DNA from: Octopus sinensis | Lineage: Eukaryota | DNA: 9,054 nt | Assembly (NCBI RefSeq): GCF_006345805.1 | Contig: NW_021828142.1 | Span: forward strand, 1-9,054 | Reading direction: 5' to 3' | Notes under the pieces: generated by a model | Databases searched by the model: none | Told to the model about the DNA's origin: nothing | The model's input: only the letters and a program-made list of their open reading frames with translations | Position numbers and translations under genes: made by a program | Shown: piece after piece, positions 1,895 through 8,734 of the stretch | Numbering within the stretch: the stretch's first letter is position 1 | Layout: every line of letters begins with the position of its first letter

Positions 1895-1949
<55 letters not shown>
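1895..1949. repeat. Compound microsatellite (AC)13(AT)14
   Basis: Read directly. Forms the left flank of the 492-bp array. Confidence 0.97.
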
Positions 1950-1954
<5 letters not shown>

Positions 1955-1979
1955 TCAATATAGGGTGGCAAGGAAATTT
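1948..1979 (-). repeat. Inverted cap: reverse-complement copy of part of the array unit
   Basis: 1948-1976 taattaatcaatatagggtggcaaggaaa is the exact reverse complement of 2125-2153 (29 bp). Confidence 0.92.
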
Positions 1980-2308
1980 GCGGTAGAAGCTTTGGCTGTT
2001 ATTTCTAGTGGGTGAATGGCCTATTATGGCCGTTCCTTAATTGTTAATGTTGAACTTAAAAATGGTCTATGACTATTTAATCTTTTCCCACTGGGCCGCT
2101 GGTGGCAATAAAATTCTACAAAATTTTCCTTGCCACCCTATATTGATTAATTATGAATTTTTTGGTTAATTCCGTAATGGAATCGACGGCTGATATTTAT
2201 TTGCTGCCGATAAATTTGGCGCGAGTGCGACGATTTGAAAATTTTAGGTCAGATATTGCCTTGGCAAGATTGGGTATGCCTCGTGTAAAATCTGTTCCGA
2301 CTTGAGCT

Positions 2309-2414
2309 ATTTTTTGTGAAGAATCCGAGGGCTTATGGAAGATTGGCTTGATTTAATTTAATCAGGTTAGTTACCATTAAAACAGCGGATGAAACGGTAT
2401 ACCGTACAAGAAAT
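2309..2414 (+). ncRNA. Type I hammerhead ribozyme, copy 1 (C3 missing as assembled)
   Basis: attttttg-[c missing]tgaaga-atccg...cggat-gaaa-cggtataccg-ta-caagaaat. Predicted cleavage after 2406. Confidence 0.7.
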
Positions 2415-2802
2415 TACAGGGTAAAAATGTTTTTTTAATTTTCTCCTGTTTACGGAATTAATCTTTATTTGCGGCGGTAGAAGCTTTGGCTGTTATTTCT
2501 AGTGGGTGAATGGCCTATTATGGCCGTTCCTTAATTGTTAATGTTGAACTTAAAAATGGTCTATGACTATTTAATTTTTTCCACTGGGCCGCTGGTGGCA
2601 ATAAAATTCTACAAAATTTTCCTTGCCACCCTATATTGATTAATTATGAATTTTTTGGTTAATTCCGTAATGGAATCGACGGCCTGATATTTATTTGCTG
2701 CCGATAAATTTGGCGCGAGTGCGACGATTTGAAAATTTTAGGTCAGATATTGCCTTGGCAAGATTGGGTATGCCTCGTGTAATACTGTTTCCGACTTGAG
2801 CT

Positions 2803-2906
2803 ATTTCCTTGCTGAGAATCCAGGGCTATGGAAGATTGGCTTGATTTAATTTAATCAGGTTAGTTTACCATTAAACACGGATGAAACGGTATACCGTACA
2901 AGAAAT
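2803..2906 (+). ncRNA. Type I hammerhead ribozyme, copy 2 (N7 and one stem-II base missing as assembled)
   Basis: atttccttg-ctga[-]ga-atcc...cggat-gaaa-cggtataccg-ta-caagaaat. Predicted cleavage after 2898. Confidence 0.7.
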
Positions 2907-3290
2907 TACAGGGTAAATGTTTTTTTTTAATTTTCTCCTGTTTACGGAATTAATCTTTATTTGCGATAGAAGCTTTGGCTGTTATTTCTAGTGGGTGAAT
3001 GGCCTATTATGGCCGTTCCTTAATTGTTAATGTTGAACTTAAAAATGGTCTATGACTATTTAATTTTTTCCCACTGGGCCGCTGGTGGCAATAAAATTCT
3101 ACAAAATTTTCCTTGCACCCTATATTGATTAATTATGAATTTTTTGGTTAATTCCGTAATGGAATCGACGGCTGATTTTTATTTGCTGCCGATAAATTTG
3201 GCGCGAGTGCGACGATTTGAAAATTTTAGGTCGATATTGGCCTGGCAAGATTGGGTATGCCTCGTGTAAATCTCTGTTCCGACTTGAGCT

Positions 3291-3397
3291 ATTTCTTGCT
3301 GAAGAATCCGAGGGCTTATGGAAGATTGGCTTGATTTAATTTAATCAGGTTAGTTTAACCATTAAACAGCGGATGAAACGGTATACCGTACAAAAAT
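3291..3397 (+). ncRNA. Type I hammerhead ribozyme, copy 3 (intact catalytic core)
   Basis: Stem I 5' atttcttg 3291-3298; core CTGAAGA 3299-3305; stem II atccg 3306-3310 / cggat 3370-3374; GAAA 3375-3378; stem III cggtataccg 3379-3388; GTA triplet with cleavage after 3390; stem I 3' caaaaat 3391-3397 (caagaaat in copies 1 and 2). Confidence 0.9.
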
Positions 3398-3514
3398 TAC
3401 AGGGTAAATGTTTTTTTAATTTTCTCCTGTTTACGGAATTATCTTTATTTGCGGTAGAAGCTTTGGCTGTTATTTCTAGTGGGGTGAATGCCTATTATGG
3501 CCGTTCCTTAATTG

Positions 3515-3518
<4 letters not shown>

Positions 3519-3550
<32 letters not shown>
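3519..3550. repeat. (TA)16 microsatellite
   Basis: Read directly. Right flank of the array and left flank of PLE-2. Confidence 0.97.
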
Positions 3551-3579: not shown

Positions 3580-4445
3580 TGTAGAAGACACTTAGTAGTG
3601 CTCAAATGATCCAAACTTAGACTCATACCTTTACAGGGAATCAATTCCACAGGATTTTTAAAAATCATAACCTAGGTATCTCATTCGAAAATGACACACA
3701 CTGGAAACATCTTAAATCTATATCACCCTTTCTAGAAACCCTATCAATCATTACAATATATCTACATCCTATCAAATTACCCTAAACTTACTCCTATAGA
3801 ATAGTCACAGATATTTTTATCAGAATCTCCAGCTTATCTACTAACAAAGATATTTTTAATAATCATGCCCCACACTATAACCAAGCTCAGCAGATAAGTG
3901 GTTTCTGTAAAAAGAACTCTTATATCTCCAACACTAAACTTAAGGCAAAAATTGCACATTTCTTTCCTAGAGCAGGTAGGAAGACCACAGAGTAGGTAGG
4001 AAAACCACAGAACAGGTAGGAAAACTTGCAATTATTAGGTGTTTCAATTCAGCCCTCTTGGAGGTTTCTGTCAATGCAAAAATGTAGTCTACAAGTGCAG
4101 AGTAATAATACTATGCTCCCACCAGTAAGGGTCTATAACGACAGAATGTCAATTTCAAGCACTGCTACTGAGCACAAATGGACTCTTTCTCCAATCCAAA
4201 TTCTAAATATCTACCACCTTAGCAACTTAAACATAACCACAATCCAACAACAATCCCAAAACTACTCTATCCCGATCCATCATAAGGAGGCTCCCTCGTT
4301 CAGCTAAAACCTTGGTATTTGTAAGGGATCACTAATCATCCTTTGCAACCACAATCCCTGATTACTTAATAGATTCTCAGATGTAATACTCTCTTGTAAA
4401 CGCAGGTTCTACTCATCATTTACTCATTTTATTAAATCTATATAA
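3580..4445 (+). pseudogene. PLE reverse transcriptase (palm end/thumb), Cys linker and GIY-YIG endonuclease remnant
   Basis: With frameshifts: IFKNHNLGISFE (3654-3689), YHPF*KPYQSLQYIYILSNYP (3721-3783), RISSLSTNKDIFNNHAPHYNQAQQISGF (3822-3905), KTCNY*VFQFSPLGGFCQCKNVVYKCRV (4021-4104), then traces of TE..F..RY..HK.SFSNP and SII, LLNRFSDVILSCK (4362-4403), stop 4443-4445. The motifs are in the order expected for an RT then C-terminal EN PLE. Confidence 0.8.
3969..4026 (+). repeat. Three copies of a 20-bp unit (agagcaggtaggaaaaccac-like) in the RT-EN linker
   Basis: agagcaggtaggaagaccac / agagtaggtaggaaaaccac / agaacaggtaggaaaact. Confidence 0.85.
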
Positions 4446-5353: not shown

Positions 5354-5385
<32 letters not shown>

Positions 5386-6723: not shown

Positions 6724-6755
<32 letters not shown>

Positions 6756-6880
6756 ATAGAGGTAGTGGAGGTACTGGTGGTAGTAGTATTGATGGTAGAA
6801 GTAGTAGTAGTAAGAAGAGGAGTAGCAATGGTAGTAGTAATGGTGGTGGTTTCGGCTGCAGAAATGGTCATGGTAACAGA
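6724..6880. repeat. (TAG)n microsatellite decaying into (GTA/GGT)-rich low complexity
   Basis: Read directly. Explains the poly-S/T/L ORFs at 6631-6925. Confidence 0.92.
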
Positions 6881-7228: not shown

Positions 7229-8015
7229 CATCATCATCATCATCATCATTTAGCGTCCGTTTTCCATGCTAGCATGGGTTGGACGGTTCAACTGGGGTCT
7301 GGGGAGCCCGAAGGCTGCACCAGGCCAGTCAGATCTGGCAGTGTTTCTACAGCTGGATGCCCTTCCTAACGCCAACCACTCCGAGAGTGTAGTGGGTGAT
7401 TTTATGTGCCACCGACACAGGTGCCAGACGAGGCTGGCGAACGGCCACGCTCGGATGGTGTTTTTATGTGCCACCGACACAGGTGCCAGACGAGGCTGGC
7501 AGGGCCACGCTCGGATGGTGTTTTTATGTGCCACCGACACAGGTGCCATGAGGCTGGCAGACGGCCACCTCGGATGGTGTTTTTATGTGCCACCGCACAT
7601 GTGCCAGATGAGGCTGGCGACGGCCACGACGGTATGGTTGTTTTTTATGTGCCACCGACACAGGTGCCAGACGAGGCTGCGAACGGCCACGCTCGGATTG
7701 TGTTTTTATGTGCCACGACACAGGTTCCAGAGAGAGCTGGCGAACGGCCACGCTCGGATGGTGTTTTTATGTGCCACCGACACAGGTGCCAGACGAGGCT
7801 GGCGAACGGCCACGCTCGGATGGTGTTTTTATGTGCCACCGACACAGGTGCCAGACGAGGCTGGCGAACGGCCACGCTCGGATGGTGTTTTTATGTGCCA
7901 CCGACACAGGTGCCAGATGAGGCTGGCGGACGGCCACGATCGGATGGTGTTTGTTACGTCCCCAAAGCACGGAGGCCAGTCTATGCGGTACTGGCTACGG
8001 CCACGTTCGGATGAT
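7229..8015 (-). mobile_element. 5'-truncated non-LTR retroelement 3' end (RTE-type LINE 3'UTR, or a SINE sharing it) with (ATG)7 tail and internal minisatellite
   Basis: Minus strand ends ...ggttggcgttaggaagggcatccagctgtagaaac...aacccatgctagcatggaaaacggacgctaa(atg)n. Short-repeat tails are typical of RTE-clade elements. An older homolog lies at 5447-5625. Confidence 0.7.
7401..8015. repeat. 62-bp GC-rich minisatellite, 9 well-conserved units plus 1 diverged unit
   Basis: tttatgtgcc recurs at 7401, 7463, 7523, 7582, 7644, 7705, 7766, 7828 and 7890; diverged unit at 7951-8015. Confidence 0.95.
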
Positions 8016-8055
8016 TTATATCATATATGATAACACAGAGCACAAGTGTGATTAA

Positions 8056-8703: not shown

Positions 8704-8734
<31 letters not shown>
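8704..8734. repeat. (TG)15 microsatellite
   Basis: Read directly. Confidence 0.97.

Follow-up and report, generated by a model that had tools for sequence, protein, structure and literature searches.

The 9,054 nt of Octopus sinensis DNA analysed here (the window, which is an entire unplaced 9-kb contig) very probably contain one insertion of a non-autonomous, non-coding, non-LTR retrozyme, built from a 491-nt unit with a type I hammerhead ribozyme. The family to which it belongs adds to the known non-LTR retrozymes and has a long, unusually conserved helix II. The insertion fits the plan of the family's other insertions, with a short minus-strand tail, a plus-strand arm and (TA)n flanks (Table 1). 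The outer end of the tail is one of two putative priming sites of the family (site B, ..GATTAATTAT), the 3' end of the plus arm at position 3519 is the other (site A, ..TTGTTAAT), and where the arms meet, 4 nt (ATTT) are common to both.

Table 1. Features of the putative retrozyme insertion, by position in the window. Unit positions refer to the 491-nt consensus.
Feature	Position	Strand	Evidence and remarks
Left target microsatellite, (AC)n(AT)n	1895-1949	.	TRF
Short inverted arm (tail), 33 nt, unit 205-237	1947-1979	-	BLAST of the 491-nt consensus against the window
Plus arm, 3.1 units with three hammerheads; 5'-truncated, start at unit 59, end at unit 131	1976-3519	+	TRF (tandem repeat, 494-bp unit x 3.1, 95% matches) and BLAST
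Internal copy of site A, TTGTTAAT, unit 124-131	2041-2048	+	Mapping; hairpin loop in the whole-unit fold
Internal copy of site B, GATTAATTAT, unit 228-237	2145-2154	+	Mapping; long unpaired stretch in the whole-unit fold
Hammerhead copy 1	2309-2414	+	Alignment to consensus; family model R1, 124.6 bits; predicted unit boundary 2406/2407
Hammerhead copy 2	2803-2906	+	Alignment to consensus; family model R1, 116.9 bits; unit boundary 2898/2899
Hammerhead copy 3	3291-3397	+	Alignment, Rfam on sub-stretch; R1, 130.9 bits; predicted cleavage after A3390
Copy 3, 5' side: ATTTCTTG	3291-3298	+	
Copy 3, 5' side: CTGAAGA	3299-3305	+	
Copy 3, 5' side: ATCCG	3306-3310	+	
Copy 3, 5' side: 59-nt insert (helix II extension: internal loop, 4-bp helix, 14-bp hairpin with 5 G-U pairs)	3311-3369	+	Minimum-energy fold
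Copy 3, 3' side: CGGAT	3370-3374	+	
Copy 3, 3' side: GAAA	3375-3378	+	
Copy 3, 3' side: CGGTATACCG	3379-3388	+	
Copy 3, 3' side: TA	3389-3390	+	
Copy 3, 3' side: CAAAAAT	3391-3397	+	
Arm-terminal copy of site A	3512-3519	+	Insertion mapping
Right target microsatellite, (AT)16	3518-3550	.	TRF and insertion mapping

Several other repeats are present in the window. A 62-bp unit is repeated 9.1 times at 7395-7952, within a longer dispersed element (7266-8030) that also adjoins a Penelope-like element at locus L151 and is present in the flank of locus L009; an apparent 254-aa open reading frame is a by-product of this repeat. A 20-bp unit is present 2.8 times at 3969-4025, an imperfect (TAG)n of 116 bp lies at 6724-6839, and (CT)n and (TG)n microsatellites lie at 5354-5385 and 8704-8734. 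Weak Rfam matches to a miRNA and a scaRNA coincide with microsatellites.

Structure and condition of the hammerhead

Taken together, the three copies in the window yield a consensus with every element of a type I hammerhead: an 8-bp stem I, CUGAAGA, a stem II of 5 bp extended by 58 nt, GAAA, a stem III of 4 bp and the cleavage-site triplet GUA, in which H17 is not G. A preliminary description of this DNA had quoted the three-copy consensus correctly: it is identical to the genome-wide consensus and is matched exactly by 83 of the 123 copies in 30 fetched loci, counts that overlapping loci inflate somewhat. The full core, A15.1-U16.1 pair and GUA triplet named in that description are all present in the family consensus, and the core is present in copy 3. 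GUA is known as a triplet of natural hammerheads (PMC1636495). Pair 10.1-11.1 is A-U in the consensus of the young copies, not the usual G-C; it is the most conserved pair after 15.1-16.1, and mismatches there can still support activity (PMC3088659). Helix I has no internal loop inside its 8 bp. In helix II, an internal loop that is conserved and lies beyond the fifth pair (AGGGC.. / ..AAACAG) is a candidate for a tertiary contact to helix I.

Aligned to the family consensus, none of the three window copies is intact. In copy 1, C3 is missing and one C of stem I is changed to T. Copy 2 is short of one A in CUGAAGA and one G in stem II, and a C is inserted in its stem I. In copy 3 the G of CAAGAAAT is absent from the 3' strand of stem I, so that six of eight stem I pairs remain, and the insert is longer by one A; its core, stem II and stem III are intact. 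The hammerhead of the preliminary description is thus intact in the consensus and not in the individual copies, each of which bears lesions that in two of them (copies 1 and 2) affect the core. Judged by these lesions, copies 1 and 2 are probably dead as ribozymes and all three copies are probably impaired, whereas the hammerhead of the family consensus is plausibly active. The window copies belong to the youngest subfamily and are either decayed or mis-assembled. Because the differences are nearly all single-base insertions or deletions and the 9-kb contig is unplaced, assembly error is as likely a cause as real decay.

Folded alone, as the preliminary description had suggested, the 107-nt consensus adopts the exact three-way junction of a hammerhead as its minimum-energy structure (-35.3 kcal/mol; z = -5.2; none of 200 shuffled sequences as good), with the 4-bp stem III closed by a UAUA loop, helices II and III looped, and helix I open. 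The insert, put at about 59 nt before, has that length in copy 3 owing to its extra A and is 58 nt in the consensus, and the 12-bp hairpin with four G-U pairs that had been drawn within it is replaced in the fold by a hairpin of 14 bp with five G-U pairs, flanked by a 4-bp helix. When flanking sequence is included, the hammerhead lies 1.2-3.9 kcal/mol above the minimum-energy fold, and in a full dimer 8 kcal/mol above it; stems II and III persist in every longer context and stem I competes with upstream pairing, so that the hammerhead in these contexts is an accessible alternative fold, not the ground state. The circular 491-nt unit folds at -144.9 kcal/mol on the plus strand (z = -4.7 against shuffled sequences, with 60% of bases paired) and at -101.8 kcal/mol on the minus strand, in agreement with the earlier reading of the G-U pairs as a sign of plus-strand RNA structure.

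An Rfam scan of the full window did not report the hammerhead. When the 151 nt at 3270-3420 were searched alone, model RF00163 (Hammerhead_1) scored 14.3 bits (E = 0.84) and did not reach its cut-off of 34, with an alignment that spans the full model (positions 1-45) and accommodates the long insert in loop II. The low score is attributable to this insert, which thus conceals the motif from standard searches as had been predicted. A strict descriptor (stem I of at least 6 bp, stem II of at least 4 bp, stem III of at least 3 bp, insert of at most 90 nt) had no match in 2000 random 9-kb sequences with the dinucleotide make-up of the window, and a loose descriptor had 0.0005 matches per random window.

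Eight places in the genome, minimal hammerheads included, score above the Rfam hammerhead cut-off. A second hammerhead family in the genome is older and has no sequence relationship to the 491-nt family. It has an insert of about 65 nt in loop II, scores 25-34 bits with RF00163, and forms a helix III of 1 bp closed by a palindromic loop of the GATC type; similarity among its members is about 70-85% (loci L038, L047, L054 and L076-L080; for example G000:C7:2605576-2605684). The separation of the two core halves by an unusually long stem II, as first described, is accordingly confirmed for the 491-nt family and is not unique to it. Minimal type I hammerheads of the Penelope-like kind (GTACCTGAAGAGACCCAGAACAGGTCGAAACATGTGTCGTAC) are found at loci L031, L034-L037, L039-L042 and others.

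A dispersed family with fixed 3' ends

The genome searched comprises 2,719,151,902 bp in 13,516 contigs, with chromosome-scale contigs numbered to at least C29. A 130-nt query gave 866 first-look candidates, of which 40 were scored and found to be at least 98% identical, and an exact 29-mer that covers the 3' strand of stem II, GAAA, stem III and the 3' strand of stem I (CGGATGAAACGGTATACCGTACAAGAAAT) is present in 539 copies, against none for its reversed control. The consensus unit has 491 nt and 36.5% GC, its longest open frame in circular reading has 68 codons, and 33 distinct monomers differ from it by about 1%, as do copies on different chromosomes from each other. On C1 and C2, 100 listed copies form 33 loci; arrays contain from one to at least 11 units each and occupy a few hundred loci. 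The arms consist of the unit only, with no LTR, primer-binding site or polypurine tract. The word satellite, used for the unit in the preliminary description, does not suit a dispersed retroelement that forms short arrays with fixed 3' ends within (TA)n at many loci. A classical satellite, with long homogeneous arrays at few loci and unequal exchange, was rejected on account of the short arrays, the many loci and the 3' ends fixed in (TA)n. No description of the family was found in the literature on hammerheads in octopus. Fifteen metagenome matches to the motif CTGANGAATCCG-N(50-70)-CGGATGAAAC were dismissed as chance, all being prokaryote-like and without stem I or stem III.

Thirteen insertions were mapped with the consensus after overlapping 3-kb loci had been merged, and the loci of C1 and C2 were analysed by coordinates only. 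Most insertions consist of a minus arm followed by a plus arm, joined 5' to 5', and some have one arm; by coordinates, all 15 two-stranded loci on C1 and C2 are minus-then-plus. The inner ends of the arms are variable and truncated, and the inner junctions differ at each locus: some show microhomology of 0-8 nt, others contain filler of 9-20 nt. On the outer (3') side, arms stop at one of two fixed places, unit position ~131 (site A) or ~234-237 (site B), both AU-rich and unpaired in the whole-unit fold. Nearly all insertions abut (TA)n on both sides, and at C3, 97.22 Mb, the sole mapped insertion that does not lie in a microsatellite, 11 bp of target sequence (GTTTCTATATA) are duplicated at its flanks. 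Genome-wide, the junction of the 131-end with (TA)n is found 154 times and that of the 237-end 798 times. Wherever two ends lie within 8 kb on C1 and C2, one is A and the other B (10 of 10 pairs); the same combination is found, with no exception, in eight two-armed young and four older insertions, a set that overlaps with the C1-C2 pairs. The fixed 3' ends, 5' truncation, target duplication and microhomology are marks of target-primed reverse transcription. According to a 2020 review, animal retrozymes contain no motif that points to a mobilising element (PMC7761336); the 491-nt family, by its fixed AU-rich 3' ends, (TA)n target and inverted arms, does point to mobilising machinery.

In four or five of the roughly 21 arms, the 5' end falls within unit 6-9, shortly 3' of the predicted cleavage site (C17:47.35 Mb, C2:168.44 Mb, C2:29.40 Mb and C1:168.55 Mb), against an expectation of about 0.4. 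This clustering could reflect either linear, ribozyme-cleaved templates or AUUAC microhomology with (TA)n. An odd stagger of nicks in (TA)n, with 3' ends in T or in A, was considered as the cause of site choice and found insufficient, since either phase yields the same product at either site. Site A (unit 118-131; window 2035-2048) has the sequence CCTTAATTGTTAAT in the young subfamily, against CCTTGATTGTTGAT in older subfamilies; two G-to-A changes have raised its AU-richness in the currently successful young subfamily.

The young family is too uniform for a test of covariation, and older relatives were therefore used. Diverged copies were found by the junction of the 237-end with (TA)n in sites that lack the young 29-mer; these sites proved to be older subfamilies, 84-94% identical. 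An alignment of 33 distinct hammerhead copies (A1) has 96.3% of cells paired with the hammerhead structure imposed, and RNAalifold, with no structure supplied, recovers the same junction. Six pairs change on both sides (shuffled alignments, 2.3 +/- 1.0, with none of 500 reaching six; partners slid by 1-3 columns, 0-1), which reflect only a small number of independent events, about six, on a tree of related copies. In stem I, pair 2.1-1.1 is A-U or G-C, columns 17-117 are U-A or C-G and the outermost pair (columns 13-120) is A-U or G-C, the latter two each with a G-U type intermediate (U-G and G-U, respectively); in stem II, pair 10.5-11.5 is G-C or A-U and pair 10.4-11.4 is U-A or C-G. The sixth change is in the two central bases of loop III (UGCA or UAUA) and preserves stem III and its loop as a perfect 12-nt palindrome, a feature through which the type I motifs of newt, ASBVd and other repeats can form double hammerheads (PMC3088659). 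At N7, A, U and C all occur, and the remaining core bases are fixed in A1 save in obviously broken copies; 15.1-16.1 is A-U in all 33 copies, and 10.1-11.1 is A-U in 20 and unpaired, mostly A.C, in 13. The family has thus kept a complete core and three helices through compensatory changes over about 15% sequence divergence, and the covariation among genomic copies that had been named as a check on the motif is found in stems I and II across subfamilies, with only N7 varying freely. Position 11.1 (A1 columns 96-97) alternates between U and C immediately before G12, a CpG context, so that the A.C state of the 13 copies is possibly a polymorphism of methylation decay, in either direction.

In the helix II extension, 99.3% of cells are paired across the 33 diverged copies, and the changes are one-sided only, from G-U to A-U or G-C. 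Old and young subfamilies are 98% identical in the extension and 91% identical over the whole unit, and no other part of the ribozyme region is as well conserved as the hairpin. It may be guessed that the hairpin acts through its sequence, as a signal that a protein binds or that makes a tertiary contact, and not as a spacer.

Mobilisation, rival readings and related elements

An autonomous Penelope-like open reading frame, with reverse transcriptase and GIY-YIG endonuclease, is absent from the unit and the arms, and the family co-occurs in the genome with autonomous elements of this type. At least 147 GIY-YIG matches were found among 4846 candidates, several of them in open frames of 781 aa. 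One element (L081, G000:C6:12730000-12735500) encodes a 765-aa protein with an RVT_1 domain, a C-terminal GIY-YIG domain and a Cys-X4-Cys-X2-Cys motif upstream of the endonuclease. Penelope-like elements of intact appearance likewise sit in (TA)n; all five sampled (L081 and L150-L153) end in ..ACAAAT (..TTTTTTACAAAT) followed by (AT)n, which is the same target as that of the retrozyme, and two of them (L081 and L153) have 92-nt repeats in the 3' UTR. Comparison of the unit with these five elements, which represent at least two families, gave only chance-level matches of 12-21 nt (best E = 0.008), and no Rfam hammerhead was found in them; with neither common sequence nor a hammerhead in the sampled elements, such a partner is a plausible candidate only. 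Craig et al. reported that Penelope-like elements show a tandem or inverted layout, a short tail and a bias for (TA)n (PMC8557442).

The life cycle proposed for the family would begin with transcription of the arrays and cleavage by the hammerheads after GUA (A17), which would free 491-nt monomers to be circularised by a host RNA ligase. A Penelope-like reverse transcriptase/GIY-YIG endonuclease would nick both strands of a (TA)n tract, and the two 3'-OH ends, paired through microhomology with sites A and B of the RNA, would serve as primers for reverse transcription. Tandem units would arise as reverse transcription proceeds round the circle, and the two cDNAs would be joined centrally by microhomology. 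The tandem arms could instead derive from uncleaved multimeric transcripts. Tentatively, and with considerable doubt, the A/B rule may be taken as the record of a single retrozyme RNA, probably a circle, that bridges the (TA)n break and is reverse-transcribed at once from two AU-rich loops.

Because Penelope-like pseudo-LTRs bear type I hammerheads and insert in tandem or inverted layout in microsatellites (PMC8557442, PMC7761336), the arrays might be mere pseudo-LTR fragments of an autonomous Penelope-like element that owns the hammerhead, with no independent retrozyme. The many Penelope-like elements in the genome agree with this, as does a 2026 preprint that derives animal retrozymes from Penelope pseudo-LTRs by an argument from Xenopus sequence homology (10.64898/2026.07.22.740005). 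However, none of the 13 mapped insertions contains a coding part, the sequence from (TA)n to (TA)n being the 491-nt unit only; the unit has no open frame longer than 68 codons; and the five Penelope-like elements, a small sample of families, share no sequence with it. An origin of this kind is considered improbable.

It is highly improbable that the hammerhead is real and the repeat spreads as DNA, whether as a satellite (by unequal exchange and segmental movement) or as cargo of a Helitron or DNA transposon at AT-rich sites. Helitrons insert at AT and often carry tandem repeats, and a tandem unit flanked by (AT)n fits such a process, but no terminal repeats or Helitron ends were seen. DNA spread also accords poorly with outer ends fixed at two internal positions beside variable, truncated inner ends, with the strict 5'-to-5' orientation of the arms at 15 of 15 two-stranded loci, with the A/B ends of 10 of 10 pairs, with microhomology or short filler at the inner junctions and one 11-bp target duplication, and with the divergence of only about 1% between copies on different chromosomes. 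That the motif is a chance match to the hammerhead consensus within an ordinary repeat, without a catalytic role, is hardly credible. Perreault et al. cautioned that large data sets will contain chance matches to the consensus (PMC3088659), a genome of 2.7 Gb offers many trials, and the Rfam score is below threshold; yet the descriptor matched none of 2000 random windows, stems I and II show compensatory changes, N7 is the sole freely varying core position, RNAalifold recovers the junction, and the context is that of known hammerhead-bearing retrozymes.

The non-LTR retrozymes of metazoans, which consist of short tandem repeats of low GC and no coding capacity, every repeat with its own type I hammerhead, and are expressed as circular RNAs and found together with Penelope-like elements (PMC7229834, PMC7761336), are the closest parallel for the retrozyme reading preferred here. 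The 491-nt family resembles them (Cervera & de la Pena 2020, PMC7229834; PMC7761336) in its hammerhead per unit, short tandem repeats, low GC, lack of coding capacity, many dispersed loci, co-occurrence with Penelope-like elements and strongly self-paired plus-strand RNA (here a predicted fold), and shares a stable helix III with those of invertebrates. Whereas their genomic repeats measure about 150-400 bp and their circles from 150 to more than 1000 nt, the unit here has 491 nt, with a conserved 58-nt helix II extension, a 107-nt motif that the Rfam model misses, and A-U at pair 10.1-11.1. Newt satellite 2, Schistosoma Sm-alpha and Dolichopoda pDo500 (PMC2837043; PMC6155905) are likewise repeats of a few hundred bp (about 500 bp for pDo500) with one hammerhead per unit, and hammerhead satellites also show compensatory stem changes and a palindromic stem III and loop III that allow a double hammerhead (PMC3088659). 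In contrast, their motifs span about 49-70 nt with a short helix II, against 107 nt with a long helix II here, and they are described as satellites, whereas the octopus arrays of one to at least 11 units lie at a few hundred loci and have the hallmarks of retrotransposition. The minimal hammerheads of Penelope-like elements (Cervera & de la Pena 2014, as summarised in PMC7229834) have the same type I topology, palindromic loop III and Penelope-like insertion, but are there described as having no true helix III and as presumably active in dimeric form, unlike the present motif with its 4-bp helix III and A15.1-U16.1 pair. In plant LTR retrozymes and viroid-like circular RNAs (PMC4918200, PMC7761336), self-cleaving hammerheads delimit a circularisable non-coding RNA, as is predicted here; the type III hammerheads, LTRs, primer-binding site, polypurine tract and 4-bp target duplications of those systems have no counterpart in the 491-nt family.

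In the octopus, a very young family (~1% divergence) stands beside older subfamilies, which makes selection on the ribozyme fold visible. Animal tandem repeats with hammerheads have been on record since 1987 and were reinterpreted as retrozymes in 2020, and the ribozyme itself is therefore expected biology. An active-looking hammerhead that is hidden from Rfam by a long, conserved helix II implies that hammerhead counts in such genomes are underestimates. The insertion anatomy is unusually clean: insertions target (TA)n, end at two fixed, putative priming sites, have their arms joined 5' to 5' and in one case show a duplicated target. This structure, and not co-occurrence alone, connects an animal retrozyme with target-primed reverse transcription of the Penelope-like kind and makes the mechanism testable. 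If the bridging of a (TA)n break by a single RNA should prove true, it would explain the long-puzzling tandem and inverted structure and the short tail of Penelope-like insertions, and the helix II hairpin would be a recognition element for that machinery.
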